64,000 bases of DNA from Octopus bimaculoides (lineage: Eukaryota), in contig NC_068995.1 in the NCBI RefSeq assembly GCF_001194135.2, positions 41,149,296-41,213,295 on the forward strand, read 5' to 3'. The notes under the pieces are model-generated. The model searched no databases and was not told the origin of the DNA. It saw nothing but the letters and a program-made list of their open reading frames with translations. The position numbers and the translations under genes are program-made. Below are positions 26,434-59,099 of the stretch, piece by piece (position 1 is the first letter of the stretch; the number at the start of each line of letters is the position of its first letter).

Positions 26434-26860
26434 CATCATCATCATCGTTTAACGTCCGCTTTCCATGCTAGCATGGGTTGGACGATTTGACTGAGGACTG
26501 GCAAGCCAGAAGGCTGCACCAGGCTCCATCTGATCTGGTAGAGTTTCTACAGCTGGATGCCCTTCCTAATGCCAACCACTCCGAGAGTGTAGTGGGTGCT
26601 TTTATGTGCCACCGGCACGAGGGCCAGTCAGACGGTACTGGCAACTGCCATGCTCAAAAATGTGTTTTTTACATGCCACCTGCACGGGAGCCAGTCCAGC
26701 GGCACTGGCAATGACCTCGCTCGAATGATTTTCTAACGTGCCACCAGCACAAGTGCTAGAAGGCAACGCTGGTGACGATTATGTTCAAATGGTGCTATTT
26801 ACGGGCCACTAGCACGGAAGCCAGACAGCTGCCCTGGCAATGAACATGCTCAGACAGTGC
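26434..26860 (-). mobile_element. Family C retroposon (antisense), with internal ~60-bp subrepeats
   Basis: CATCATCATCGTTTAACGTCCGCTTTCCATGCTAGCATGGGTTGG. Other copies at ~25715, 31305, 33758, 34910, 36355, 45620, 48060, 48585, 50695, 51897, 58812, 61100 and 62185. Confidence 0.88.
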
Positions 26861-28349
26861 TGTTAGTGCTCTACTGGCGCAATGTATATATATATACATA
26901 TTTGTTATATACATGTGTATATGTTAATGCAAGAGAAACAGTTGTCGACTTTATAAGGTGAGATCTGTAATAAAGATATAGCTTTTCTCTATACATATTG
27001 TTATGTATAGATATTATGTGTGTGTGTCTTTGTATTTGTCTCTTACCACTTGCCAGCTGTTGTATGTCATTGATTACTGTGGGAACCGGTCCATAGTAAA
27101 TGAAGAGACGGACATTGTTGAATAGGTATGCAACAATTGCTTGCTGGAGGTAAACCTTGGGAAAGACTGTGTCGCTGAGATGATGGCAGTTAGGGAAGTG
27201 TGGCAGACACCAGTCAATGGAACCTTGGTGAGTTGGCAGAATTATTAGCAGAATCGTTAGCAGACTTAATGACATTTCACTTGTCTTTACGTTCTGGGTT
27301 CAAATGTTGCTGAGGTCGACTTTGCTCTTCACCCTTTTGAGGTTGATGGATTAAGTACCAGTTGAGGACTGGGGTTGATGTAATCAACTTAACCCCCTCC
27401 CCCCCTTGAACTTGCTGACCTTGTGCTAGAATTTGAAACCATTATTATTTTTTTGATGAAATCTCACAGCTTATTTTGCTCGGTCTTATGGAAAGGGTCA
27501 GCTGTCCACAGCCAGCAAACTAAGGTGACACTTGTTTACTAATTATGCTTCAAGAACCCTGTGGAGAACTCTTGCAGTTCCAAGCAGCGATGATTTTTGT
27601 AGGTGTTCTATCTTTACTCTAGTACCAATCTTTTTGAACCATGTTGGTAGTTGAGTTCTGACACTTTCAAGTGTGCCAGTTGCCATTGGTATCATTTCTA
27701 ATCTCCTCATTGACAACAACCTTCGTATTTCCCACTTTCAAGTCGTCGTAATTGTTGACTTTTTCTTCTTCTTTCTCTATGATCCTGTTGTCACCAGAAC
27801 ATTATTATTATTGAGTGAGAGAGCAAGAGCAATGCATATCAACAAAGTGACACTGGGGTACAAATGCACGAAGCCCAATATACCCATCATGACGACCCGT
27901 CTGATAAGGGTGCATCAAGCACATGCATCACAACCACATGTGCATGACATGGTGATCTCGTATCAAGAGAAACTGTGCATAACTTTGCAAGTGGGTCCCA
28001 ATTAGAATTTTCTTCTGGTCAAGTTGCCCATCGTGCTCAAAAATAAGATTTGTTTAAGGATCCATGTTTCCCGGGGTGAATTATTCAAATCCCAAAGAAT
28101 TCCTCTCAACACATGGCTATGATACTCCCCCACTACTCCTGCTCATGATCAAAGATGCACATATCGTCAGCCACCAAGGGACATGCTCAACTGGTTATGG
28201 TCAAGCAACTGACAAGCAAGTCTGTGGTATTGAACAGAACATTTGCTGTAGCCCATCTTTTATACCAAGACAAAACATGTGCATGATAGCACTTCCAATC
28301 AGTTAAGATCAGAAGCCATGAGAGCCAGTGCTTGGTATTGCATCAGGGC

Positions 28350-29039: not shown

Positions 29040-29623
29040 GTAAGTTTACCAATTCTTTTCCTTTTGAAGTTTTGCTTTGTGTAATTGTCCTCCTCCTCCT
29101 CATTTAATGTCTGCTTGAATGGTTTCTTAGAATCAGGAATTTATGTACAACTGAGGAAACTAAAATGAATCCTTTATGAATATATTGAGTAGAGGATGTT
29201 GGCTAATTTGGAGAAACGTTTGATTAGTGAAAATAATGGTTGAGCCTGTAAGTGGTTACTTAGCTTGCTAGAAATAATAACTAAACCTCTCTCAAGTCAG
29301 GCTCTTCTATAGCATAATCAGGAGATAAAGAACAGACATTGATAACCATTTCTAGGGTCTCCAATATTGGTGCAACTAAAACCAAGAAGGATTCAGTGGA
29401 TAATGTAGTGCTTCACAGCCCCTCCTTAAAAAGGTCTGGCCGTGGGTGGACTGCTTTTGATAATTGTTTTACTTGGTTTACTCAATCAAGATTGAACTGG
29501 GACTAGATAGCAACAGCAATCCTTGACCTGATAGATGATTTATTTAATACAGATCAATATCTTGTTGTGTTTGTGTGTGAAATCAATATTGTCCAGATTT
29601 TATCATGAGGTGGCGGTACATAT

Positions 29624-29727
29624 GTACTAACAACGGCGGTACATATTCTAAAATTGGAACGATGCTGAGATTAGCATGGCCCCTGTGTAATGATGACATG
29701 CAAATTCGTGAAGTGTTCCATATTTTT
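29624..29727 (+). pseudogene. U6: U6 snRNA retropseudogene (near full length), fused at its 3' end to a retroposon
   Basis: ACATATTCTAAAATTGGAACGAT...AGATTAGCATGGCCCCTG...GATGACATGCAAATTCGTGAAGTGTTCCATATTTTT matches canonical U6. The ACAGAGA box is destroyed (GCTGAGA plus a 3-nt deletion) and three CpGs read TpG. Match is secure from ~29635. Confidence 0.93.
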
Positions 29728-30024
29728 GTAAAGACATTCGAGCGAGATTGTTGCCAGTGCCGCTGGACTGGCTCCTGTGCAGGTGGCACATAAAATACAC
29801 CATTTTGAGCGTGGCCGTTGCCAGTACCATGTGACTGGCCCTCATGCCGGTGGCACATAAAAGCACTCACTACACTCTTGGAGTGGTTGGCCTTAGGAAG
29901 GGCATCCAACTGTAGAAACTCTGCCAAATCAGATTGGAGCCTGGTGTAGCCATCTGGTTCACCAGTCCTCAGTCAAATCGTCCAACCCATGCTAGCATGG
30001 AAAGCGGACGTTAAACGATGATGA
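29728..30024 (+). mobile_element. 5'-truncated family C retroposon joined directly to U6
   Basis: Sense copy ending GCGGACGTTAAACGATGATGAT; begins immediately after the U6 TTTTT. Confidence 0.92.
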
Positions 30025-30935
30025 TCTAATACTTTTATCATAATGTTATTACTAAGAATAATGACAACGGACCGAGATTCTGGTGATATGAAGTTCTTAA
30101 GAAAACCTTTCCACGTCAGTGAAACCGAGATCCAGAAACGCTGTGTGTTCCACCTATATGTAACAAGAAAACTTATCATACACCCTACCCCAACAAACCA
30201 AACTACATCTCTTTGACGAACTATACTTATCTCTCACACTCCAGTTTTGTCCTCTCGGCCCTGTCCACTGCATCATTGCTATCCAGTAGCCCACCCCCAA
30301 CTATATACCCAGGTTTTCACCACTCACCACATTCCCCTCCCCCACTCTCTACTCATGCTTCTTTGGCAATCCCCTGCCACTTAGATTATGACCTCCATAC
30401 CTCAAGGGTATTCCCTGGCATTTCCACCATCTATCTATCTATCTATCTATCCCTTCTTTTACTCAACCATCCCATCTATATTCTGATCCCCCATCCCTTG
30501 TGAGTATGCCTGGCATTTTGCCACCATCTTTCTCCTGCTCTCTCTTGCACTCCTGCTGTCTTCCACTCTCTCTCTCTCTCCTTCTCTTGCTCTTCCTTCA
30601 TGTTGGATAACCATGTATCCCCCCCTTACAGCAGCACACCTGTTTTTGTCCTCATTTTTCTCTCTCTCTCTGGTTGGGTAACCATGTGCCTCCCCTACAG
30701 CAAGACACCTGTTTCTGATTCTTTGACTCACTATAACCATTCACCATCTGACACAGGACCCCCCCCTCCATTGCCCCCTTCTTTCTCATCTCAAAGATTC
30801 CTTGTTTTGCAAGTTACTTGGTGGTCCTGCCAGTGCTGGTGCCATGTTAAAGAGACCGATAGAATAAGTACTAGGCTTACAAAGAAGAAGTCCTATCCAC
30901 AGTCAAAAAACTGAAACAAGTAAAAGAGTAAAGAG

Positions 30936-31248
30936 ACATGCTGGACTGTGCAAACCTCAACCCTGACTTTATGAAGATCTTCATCACTTGTGATGAGACA
31001 TGGGTTTATGGTCTCTGCGTGATGTGTTTGGTCATCTTGCATGGAAATGAAAATCTGACGAGTGAGTAAGTACTACATGTCTGTACTCTAGGTGTAACAG
31101 CTGGGAACTGATGCAGCCTACTGGTGCAAAAATGTTCATGCATGCACAGGAAGGGTGTCATCGCCTCCCACCCAAAGCATTTTGCTGACACGACATTAGT
31201 TTTGGAAGAAAAAAGTAAAGTTAGATACTTTTTGAATGCACCTCATAT
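30936..31248 (+). mobile_element. Internally deleted mariner element
   Basis: MLDCANLNPDFMKIFITCDETWVYG is the first catalytic D motif (I.TGDETWVY). The end ATACTTTTTGAATGCACCTCATA+TA resembles a mariner 3' TIR followed by TA. Confidence 0.78.
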
Positions 31249-37952: not shown

Positions 37953-38890
37953 ATGAAGCAGATGGCTGGGAGACTGTGCAGCGTGGAGGCAAATCTAAAT
38001 CTCGAAACCACAACAATAATAATAACAGTAATGTTGTTAATAATAATAATAATAATAGTAGTCGATCTGAAAAGTCTTATCATAATAATAATAATAACAG
38101 TAATAACAATGTAGCTGGTTTTGCGAAAAGCCGACGCTCAGAAAAATACTCAAATAATCGAACGTTTGTTGAATCCAACAACAACAACAACAACAACCAT
38201 AGTTGTAATAACAGTCATAATAATAATAATAATTCAAATTTCTCCAAGTCCACCGTTTATCTTCCTGGTCAGAAGGACCGTGTCTTCAGCTCTTCACCAA
38301 CTTCCATACATTCTAACTACATTTTGCCATGTTTTTCTGATCAGAAGCTCCACACAAACTGCCCCAAATCTCCCCAGCCCCACAACAACAACAACAACAA
38401 CAACAACAAAAACAACAGCAGCCACACAAGAGCATACCATGGAAACCATATGACCCCGTTGTCGTCATCGTCGTCGTCAGTGAAACACTCTGTCAAGTCC
38501 CCTCCAACTCCCTCGGGTGCAGCGGAGCATGGAGGCCGGACTGGCAGGACTCAAAGGCGCGAACACACTCCTGACCGGTTCTACGGGAGCCGAACCTGGG
38601 ACTCTGGGATCGGCCTTCATGAGAGGACGCATAGTAAAGAGAGCGAGAAGGAGAACATCCCTGTGCTTGGTTGTGATCTGGATGCCAACGACGGGGATGA
38701 TGAGGCTGAAGATGAACTGTTGTTGGACATATACGAACTTGAGGATTACAACTCGTTGAAAGACGAGGAATCGGACCATGTTGTATTCAGTGAAACTGAA
38801 GAACTACATTCAATGTCTTCCCAGAAATCTCCAGAAATCTCAGATGACGACAAAGTGAATTTTGATGAGGATGAAAAGAAAGCATTTGCT
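37953..38890 (+). CDS. SCAPER: SCAPER large exon: DEADGWETVQRGG... poly-Asn low-complexity region ...KENIP...KKAFA
   Basis: tttctag| acceptor (phase 1) and |gtaagt donor (phase 0). 938-nt open frame. GWETVQRG and the later EKENI resemble vertebrate GWETVQRG and DKENV. Confidence 0.92.
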
Positions 38891-38948
38891 GTAAGTCACC
38901 TCACTCTTTACTTATATTTTTATACTATCGACATTTTTTGGGTGCCAT

Positions 38949-39116
38949 TTTAGCATGCAGTCTACTTGGCCATTTACACTTTAGCATGAAGTATATCCCT
39001 AACCTAACCATAATTCTAATCCTAATCCCTAACCTTAATTCTAATCCTAAACCTTTACTCAGATCAGGTTATTTCACAGTGTAGGCTTCAGATATTGTGG
39101 TAGACTGCATGCTAAA
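38949..39116. mobile_element. 168-bp MITE with 17-bp TIRs and internal CCCTAA-like repeats
   Basis: TTTAGCATGCAGTCTAC (38949-38965) and GTAGACTGCATGCTAAA (39100-39116) form a perfect inverted repeat. Interior ccctaacctaacc...cctaatccctaacc. Confidence 0.82.
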
Positions 39117-57926: not shown

Positions 57927-59001
57927 TCCACCACCACAACCTCTCTTGCTTGTTGATAGAGTTAATGTTTTAGTTGTAATCATTTCTAGAGAAGTGGGTA
58001 AAAAACTTATATATGGCTTCTTGTTTGTGTGTCCCTTACTTGGAAACAAGGTTTGTTGACAGGGTTAGGGTGTCCCACTGTAGAATACAGCTTCAACCAG
58101 ATTTATCCAACTCGGACCAGGATGGAAACTATGAGCATAAGAATGATGAAGTTACATGATGTTCTTAGATTGATAAATCTCAAAGTGTACTTGGTTATGT
58201 GTCAAATGGTAAGGGATATTACTTTGTCAGCATCACAGTTGTTTGGCACTGCTAAAGGGAGTGATACTGTCAGAAGGTCGTCAGACCATTGTCATTTCTA
58301 TTCAACATGTGATAAACTGGGTGTTCTTGAATGTAAATTATATGATAAATTGATAAATTTTAGCCTGGTTAGCTTTCATACAAATCAGAAAAATGTTTTG
58401 TTTACCGATTTCTATATCAGAACAAGCATTTCCAGCTTGGCTCAGAACATCTGCTGTATTCATCCCTGAGGAGACTAAATCAAGTCAAAACTACTGTGTC
58501 TGGTGATCCGCCAGGGTTCTGAGCAAAGCCTTTGATTTTTAACACAAATCTTGTTGAGAAATTTTCTCTAAGACAAAATATTACATCAAGTGCTGTTCCA
58601 TGTTGGTGTATACAGTATAAATGTTTTTATATACTCGGTTTCTTTTAGTTTCTGTTTGAGTTTCACTCACAAGGTTTTGGTTGGCCAAGGACTGTAGTCA
58701 AAGACAATTAGCCACAGTGCTGTGGGACTGAACCTGAAACCACAAGGTTGAGAAGAAATATTCTTAACCATACAGCCATGCCTGTATTTGTGCATGTGTG
58801 TGTGTATATATGACTGGCCCTCGTGCCGGTGGCACGTAAAACGCCCACTACACTCTCGGAGTGGTTGGCGTTAGGAAGAGCATCCAGCTGTAGAAACTCT
58901 GCCAAATCAGATTGGAGCCAGGTGTCGCCTCCTGGTCCACCAGTCCTCAGTCGAATCGTCCAACCCATGCTAGCATGGAAAGCGGACGTTAAACGATGAT
59001 G

Positions 59002-59099
<98 letters not shown>

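Follow-up and report, generated by a model that had tools for sequence, protein, structure and literature searches.

A U6 snRNA/retroposon chimera with a (GAT)n tail in the genome of Octopus bimaculoides

A single Rfam match was detected by cmscan in the window (the whole 64-kb stretch of Octopus bimaculoides DNA that was analyzed). This match was to the U6 snRNA model (RF00026) on the plus strand, with a score of 82 bits (gathering score, 44; E = 2.6e-19) and coverage of positions 1 to 105 of the 105 in the model. The U6 copy ended in ATATTTTT, a short T-run resembling that of the mature RNA with 4 to 5 T at the joint, and was followed directly by 298 nt (29728 to 30025) of a retroposon, termed family C, which lay in the same orientation and ended in GTTAAAC(GAT)3. 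The original prediction had placed a near-full-length U6 copy within 29612 to 30024 and had it running, without a spacer and in the same orientation, into family C. The Rfam match and the homology to C bore out this arrangement in the assembled sequence, with the U6 copy being of full length and its true 5' end being shifted to 29624. This 5' end was confirmed by many U6-like contigs from three of the organisms compared (A, the source species; B; and E), which began to match at 29622 to 29625 and had unrelated AT-rich sequence upstream. The features of the locus are listed in Table 1.

Table 1. Features of the U6/C insert and its target site (window coordinates)
Feature	Position	Strand	Basis
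Left target flank TTTTATCATGAGG	29598..29610	.	Contigs of organisms B, C, and F align to 29610, then diverge
Locus-specific 5' extension, 13 nt, TGGCGGTACATAT	29611..29623	+	Sequence comparison, depth
Full-length U6 snRNA retropseudogene	29624..29727	+	Rfam RF00026, alignment to canonical U6
U6/C junction without spacer	29727..29728	+	Loose ends before 29727 and 29730
5'-truncated 3' part of retroposon family C	29728..30016	+	BLAST against the window, alignment
Palindrome CCATGCTAGCATGG	29987..30000	+	RNAalifold, 13 window copies
C tail (GAT)3	30017..30025	+	Last AT (30024-30025) also in the empty site
Right target flank ATCTAATACTTTTATCAT...	30024..30060	.	X13 598-nt contig, loose-end sequences

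Other parts of the window were also surveyed. The locus had been placed in a SCAPER intron; Pfam analysis of three open reading frames (ORFs) detected nothing relevant to such a context, and the best ORF had no match in a protein search. An ORF at 37976 to 38953 on the plus strand encoded 325 amino acids, with an acidic C-terminal part and long low-complexity stretches rich in Asn; it had neither a Pfam match nor a homologue in the protein collection and is probably either noncoding or a lineage-specific disordered exon. The otherwise single-copy upstream flank of the insert contained two short mid-repetitive segments (29082 to 29133 and 29238 to 29315), whose depth was tens of times that of single-copy sequence in all of the species tested. 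Downstream, positions 30825 to 30940 belonged to a second repeat of extreme abundance, present there as a fragment (...GGTGCCATGTTAAAGAGACCGATAGAATAAGTACTAGGCTTACAAAGAAGAAGTCC...; word depth of 8 to 21 million in organism A). This repeat had the upstream family consensus TTTACGTCCCCGTAACTTAGCGGTTCGGCA and represented another SINE-like family. The window contained 2,915 N in several gaps, many of them beside microsatellites, and is thus part of a gapped scaffold assembly in which joins internal to repeats should be read with caution.

The U6 copy was compared to the canonical 107-nt U6 sequence (human RNU6-1). Seven changes were located within the 5' stem-loop (29624 to 29642; GTACTAAC AACG GCGGTAC), which was nevertheless intact, all five of the five model pairs being standard. 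Outside this stem there were 8 substitutions and a 3-nt deletion, and the changes detected along the copy included ATATACT to ATATTCT, four CpG-to-TpG changes, and one G-to-T change. The ACAGAGA box was destroyed: GATACAGAGAAGATT had become GATGCTGA followed by a 3-nt gap and GATT, such that the ACAGAGAA of a functional U6 gene was replaced by GCTGA and a 3-nt deletion (GCTGA, gap, GA). Four of the changes outside the stem are CpG transitions, and those around the ACAGAGA box look like the product of one complex event. The DNA upstream of U6 was the orthologous target flank, which is also present in species without U6, indicating that no U6 promoter (upstream, polymerase III type 3) came along with the copy. 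Since the ACAGAGA box was destroyed and there was no promoter, this U6 is a dead copy and, judging by its sequence, would be expected to have no function. Complete coverage of the model, the mature-type 3' end, and upstream sequence consisting of target DNA are features of the U6 part of a U6/retroelement chimera. The variant 5' stem-loop was not confined to this locus. U6-like contigs with this stem were detected in organisms A, B, C, D, and E; approximately 50 copy-equivalents per genome aligned through it (GTACTAACAACGGCGGTAC) at ≥85%, and ~230 shared the core that follows. This stem may be the normal U6 stem of the genus or may mark a dispersed variant family.

The 13 nt preceding U6 were locus specific, with a single-copy depth in the same species (55 in run X3) and a depth of zero in other species. 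Twelve of these nucleotides were identical to U6 nucleotides 12 to 23 (29635 to 29646), a match with a probability of ~5e-6 for random filler. On this sequence identity, the segment appears to be a partial second copy of U6, which was overlooked in the original prediction, and because the extension repeats U6, the insert would be tripartite, consisting of a U6 fragment, a full-length U6 copy, and the 3' part of C. The last five bases of the extension, CATAT, were the same as the first five bases of the target segment that was deleted on insertion (see below).

Family C was characterized by a BLAST search of the region against the window, in which more than 15 other copies or fragments were detected with 70% to 92% identity (for example, 26727 to 26438, 91%; 52182 to 51903, 86%; and 58808 to 59003, 92%). 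The aligned copies shared a 3' domain with the end GTTAAAY(GAT)n, preceded by internal subrepeats of ~67 nt, and the tail motif was observed 13 times in the window compared to an expectation of 1.8. In organisms A to D, C words reached depths in the millions. Within the chimera, the C part began with the end of one subrepeat (29728 to 29752), continued through two further subrepeats (~29753 to 29819 and ~29820 to 29886), and then entered the unique 3' domain. The longest copy in the window, at 26438 to 26885 on the minus strand, carried at least two more subrepeats and extended at least 150 nt further 5'; since family-level depth (1e5 to 1e6) persisted to ~26885 in this copy, longer C elements of at least 448 nt exist. 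The claim that the C part of the chimera is 5' truncated and that its junction sequence is preceded by element sequence in another copy was borne out by this copy and by a common upstream consensus in organisms A, B, and C. The subrepeats (GCCAGTGCCGCTGGACTGGC...GGTGGCACRTAAAA...GAGCGTGGCC) varied in number, as seen at 29728 to 29886 and at 26600 to 26885. C depth dropped 10- to 100-fold between the 3' domain and the 5' subrepeats, reflecting either heavy truncation or the existence of several families with one common tail.

Its short length, very high copy number, simple-repeat 3' tail, and variable 5' truncation are traits that C shares with SINEs. No tRNA-like sequence was detected by ARAGORN in the window, in which the sole long C copy (26438 to 26885) may itself be 5' truncated; as no tRNA-like head was found, C is referred to here as a SINE-like retroposon and its head is left unnamed. 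A literature search with C sequence strings produced no relevant match. The most conserved block of C was the palindrome CCATGCYAGCATGG, 10 nt before the tail, for which RNAalifold detected a 5-bp stem that was kept in 10 to 13 of the 13 window copies, with no covariation. This palindrome is a candidate for a stem-loop recognized by the partner LINE, and C may in this respect resemble LINE systems with simple-repeat tails that recognize a 3' structure. It has been argued that in such systems U6 is mobilized only when attached to a simple-repeat tail (PMC4476161). Most of the 13 tailed copies (12 besides that of the chimera) had no target site duplication (TSD) candidate of ≥7 nt, and the few candidates were dinucleotide-repeat matches. 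This scarcity of TSDs fits microsatellite-tailed LINE systems, since U6-L2 chimeras have TSDs of 1 to 9 bp (PMC4476161). Six or seven of the 13 tails (3' ends at 26441, 33769, 36357, 40189, 59000, 61226, and 62345) ran straight into microsatellites of the (TA)n, (CA)n, or (GT)n type. Together with the scarcity of TSDs, this adjacency suggests that the partner LINE either prefers microsatellite targets or generates repeats in association with the tail.

Runs from five other organisms shared words with the region. Single-copy contigs of three of these (organisms B, C, and F) matched both flanks with ~95% identity and had 19 bp (CATATATTATTTTAATTAC) where the window has 29611 to 30023 (413 bp). 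For organism B (run X13), one 598-nt contig with a single-copy depth of 24.2 spanned both flanks: contig positions 29 to 423 matched window positions 29218 to 29610 with 18 mismatches, positions 443 to 597 matched 30024 to 30178, and 19 nt lay between the two blocks. In contigs aligned to 29524 to 29623 only, the sequence following 29610 was CATATATTATTTTAATTAC and then ATCTAATACTT in organism B, CATGTATTATTTTAATTAC and then ATCTAATACTT in organism C (X14), and CATATATTATTTTAATTAC and then ATCCAATACTT in organism F (X19). The three species therefore have ...TTTTATCATGAGG, 19 nt, and ATCTAATAC..., and the window has ...TTTTATCATGAGG, the 413 bp of 29611 to 30023, and ATCTAATAC...; the left flank was present and unchanged in the species with the empty site. 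As three species have 19 bp in place of the insert, U6 and C arrived together, as a single unit of 413 bp whose insertion deleted 19 bp of the target. An empty site in a related species had been named as a means of examining the feature, and in all three species found U6 and C were absent together, with the 413 bp corresponding to the feature as first delineated. An empty site lacking both parts is what is expected of a U6/retroelement chimera inserted in one event. A precise loss of U6 and C that left 19 unrelated bases is mechanistically implausible, and hence the insertion is a derived state of the organism A lineage, which differs from organism B by ~4.6% in the flank. The U6 part has diverged from the canonical sequence by more than would be expected from this flank divergence, a finding that counts against our preferred explanation but is tempered by the four CpG transitions and by the apparent complex event at the ACAGAGA box.

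These results bear on whether the two parts could have arrived separately after the species split, with a U6 retropseudogene inserting first and a truncated C element later landing exactly at its T-run, or in the reverse order. C is so abundant that nested or adjacent insertions are common, and no TSD ties U6 and C together. Two insertions would, however, require an exact abutment, and the chance of the 5' end of a same-strand C element falling within 1 nt of U6 is ~4e-4, given the nine other plus-strand C matches in 64 kb. Neither part has a TSD or tail of its own, U6 lacking a poly(A) or any other primer-binding tail; the 19-bp deletion would need to have one end point precisely at the final T of U6; and neither a U6-only nor a C-only intermediate was seen at the locus in organisms B, C, and F. 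We consider separate insertions improbable.

The original prediction also noted the lack of a clean TSD, which proved correct: no duplicated bases flank the whole unit, and this is explained by the 19-bp target site deletion seen against the empty site. A TSD is the classical hallmark, and its absence counts against our preferred explanation. No microhomology was observed at the 5' joint (0 nt), and that at the 3' joint, the priming site, was limited to the 2 nt AT. The sequence TTTTATCAT, which occurs on both sides, was considered as a TSD and rejected; its upstream copy is in the old flank, which was matched by the empty-site contigs without listed differences, and its downstream copy lies in flank to which the contig of organism B aligns, those bases not having been read directly. 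TSDs of L2-type chimeras are small or absent as well (PMC4476161), and the presence of a TSD therefore defines the L1 subclass rather than U6 chimeras as a class. The deletion, the lack of a TSD, and the 0 to 2 nt of microhomology are also what would be produced if a pre-existing U6-C DNA or cDNA fragment had been end joined into a double-strand break without target-primed reverse transcription. The insert, however, stops exactly at the (GAT)n tail native to C, and its start lies at or close to the native 5' end of U6, as would be expected of a retrotransposed sequence and not of a random fragment; an origin by such capture is hardly credible.

The internal junction between U6 and C was examined with assembled contigs and short words. 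C homology began at 29727/29728, with an overlap of at most 1 nt (a T) with the U6 T-run. Contigs of organisms A, B, and C aligned to 29706 to 29800 showed that members of the C family stopped matching at 29727 to 29730 and continued upstream with a common sequence (...GCCTTCCTGGCACTTGTGCCGGTGGCACG followed by TGAAAAGACATTCGAG; loose-end consensus of the three organisms), indicating that the junction lies inside a C subrepeat. The C part thus has the same orientation as U6, a truncated 5' end, and its native tail, which are hallmarks of the retroelement part of a U6/retroelement chimera. Of three sampled 31-mers in 29703 to 29762, one was present in the nine organism A runs listed, which come from three studies, and in no other organism; the other two were absent from all nine runs, including those from 2015. 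With two of three 31-mers missing, the assembled 60 nt must differ from the reads in one or more bases, which points to a base or homopolymer-length error (possibly in the length of the T-run), or a rare allele, in the assembly near the U6/C joint. A 60-nt k-mer query of 29698 to 29757 matched only unrelated organisms (G to N), and these matches disappeared when the query began at 29703, indicating that the words concerned were dominated by U6. Depth at 29706 to 29725 was zero even in the source species for both contigs and raw reads (~0.7x), a region where the method is blind because 29667 to 29732 is human U6-like.

The missing words, the lack of a contig or read across 29706 to 29725, and the gapped state of the assembly (2,915 N) would all fit an artifactual internal join, with U6 and C both present in the insert but not directly adjacent or with the junction bases being wrong. 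We regard this as a real reservation about the locus but as very unlikely. The absence of reads coincides with the blind region, an error in one base or in the length of the T-run would account for the missing words, the one locus-specific word occurs in multiple studies of organism A and in no other species, and both outer junctions were confirmed. At the 5' outer junction, a 780-nt X3 contig from the same species (depth, 55) covered 29560 to 29662 with 0 mismatches; at the 3' outer junction, a 175-nt X1 contig, also from the same species, covered 30002 to 30176 with 0 mismatches.

The 5' outer contig is also relevant to the possibility that the insert was copied from an already existing composite element with a U6 head, that is, an snRNA-headed SINE in which the chimera had formed once elsewhere, with the junction ...CCATATTTTT joined to GTAAAGACATTCGAG. 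Arguments for such an element come from the rather diverged state of the U6 part, the occurrence of the variant 5' stem in ~50 copy-equivalents per genome in four species, and a 2026 repeat annotation of Octopus vulgaris in which SINE/U and U-L1 appear as automatic classes with no description (PMC13282606). The flank, the 13-nt leader, and U6 as far as 29662 were, however, located on a unitig of single-copy depth, indicating that the 5' end of the insert does not belong to a recently amplified family, and the junction region 31-mers were detected only in organism A. Furthermore, U6 is transcribed from an external promoter. A U6 retrocopy would therefore not be transcribed on its own (PMC4494074), and descent from a U6-headed SINE appears quite improbable.

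Overall, the most probable interpretation is that the octopus insert arose by one chimeric retrotransposition, carried out by the LINE that mobilizes C, with U6 having been joined to C through RNA ligation or template switching; we hold this with good though not full confidence. A composite cDNA would have been inserted once, in the lineage leading to the sequenced species. In this event, the LINE reverse transcriptase would have been primed on the (GAT)n tail of the C RNA at a target nick after ...TTAC and would have copied ~298 nt of C before continuing into a mature U6 RNA with ~5 U at its end. By one route, U6 would already have been ligated to a 5'-OH fragment of the C RNA by an RtcB-type reaction, as established for U6/L1, where, prior to reverse transcription, RtcB joins the 2',3'-cyclic phosphate end of U6 to an RNA fragment with a 5'-OH (PMC6789731). 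By the other, the enzyme would have switched templates from C to U6, in the manner of the template switching from retroelement RNA to U6 described for U6/L1 (PMC4476161). Human U6 in its major mature form has 5 U at its end, and the U6 parts of genomic U6/L1 chimeras have 5 to 7 T (PMC6789731); the 4 to 5 T at the octopus joint fit a mature U6 end under either route and do not discriminate between them at this locus. U6 would then have been copied to its 5' end, and 13 nt from U6 positions 12 to 23 would have been added at the 5' joint, either through another template jump or through a step guided by microhomology; double template jumps have been documented for Magnaporthe chimeras (PMC2104539). 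Joining to the upstream DNA would have removed 19 bp of the target instead of duplicating it.

The original prediction of a U6/retroposon chimera with an architecture like that of U6/L1 and a non-L1, (GAT)n-tailed partner is thus supported by the empty sites in three species. Its account of established cases, confined to mammalian U6/L1, was too narrow, as U6 chimeras with L2, RTE, and their SINEs have been published for platypus and Anolis, and the octopus case is therefore less novel than first judged (PMC4476161). No report of U6 chimeras in molluscs, cephalopods included, was found among the papers searched. The case for this process in the octopus genome is based on one locus. A broader proposal, that U6 capture is a recurrent route in octopuses and that most of the ~50 to 230 dispersed U6-like copies per genome are chimeras on (GAT)n-type SINE/LINE tails, is tentative, and we give it somewhat less than an even chance. 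If it is true, U6 ligation or template switching would be an ancient bilaterian property from which snRNA-headed repeat families could arise, the SINE/U class annotated automatically in O. vulgaris being an example.

U6 chimeras are a well-studied by-product of retrotransposition; to the vertebrates and the fungus in which such by-products were known, this case adds a mollusc, along with a new SINE/LINE system. The empty site dates the insertion and provides cleaner evidence than is available for most published non-L1 examples. The locus lends support to the view that the joining of U6 to retroelement RNA is general to non-LTR retrotransposition or to RNA ligation of the RtcB type, and it offers a concrete marker for octopus phylogeny. 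As far as is visible, the insert has no functional importance for the host.

Chimeric U6/L1 retropseudogenes of mammals were reportedly described by Buzdin (2002) and by Garcia-Perez (2007) and ascribed to template switching. The octopus insert resembles the mammalian U6/L1 elements (PMC4476161; Moldovan 2019, PMC6789731) in having a full-length U6, a short T-run, and a same-orientation truncated retroelement with its native 3' tail, all inserted as one piece. It differs in its cephalopod host, in a non-L1 partner that has a (GAT)n tail and no poly(A), in a 19-bp target deletion compared to the 6- to 19-bp TSDs of U6/L1, and in the extra 13-nt U6 fragment at its 5' end. Closer in type are the U6 chimeras of platypus, which involve L2 and the SINE Mon-1 with a TGAA tail and TSDs of 1 to 9 bp, and those of the Anolis lizard, which involve L1, L2, RTE, and AnolisSINE2; from these it was concluded that U6 chimera formation is general to non-LTR retrotransposons (Doucet 2015, PMC4476161). 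As in the octopus, U6 is combined with a SINE or LINE mobilized by a microsatellite-tailed LINE and TSDs are small or absent, but in the octopus case the phylum, the SINE family, and the tail repeat are all different, and most platypus U6 parts are 5' truncated whereas the octopus U6 is of full length and carries an added fragment.

The tripartite retrogenes of Magnaporthe grisea (PMC2104539) are similar in having three joined segments and more than one template jump per LINE reverse transcription; in the fungus other RNAs and another LINE are involved, whereas the third segment of the octopus insert is only 13 nt and would derive from U6 itself. The SINEU elements of crocodilians (Kojima 2015, PMC4494074) also have an snRNA-derived head on a retroposon body or tail and are thought to have originated through template switching. 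These are amplified families with U1 or U2 heads, which show that snRNA joining events can seed SINEs, in contrast to the octopus element with its U6 head and single-copy depth at the 5' end. The U6-C insert is thus a mollusc example of a kind of fusion already known in vertebrates, in a new phylum and with a new partner.
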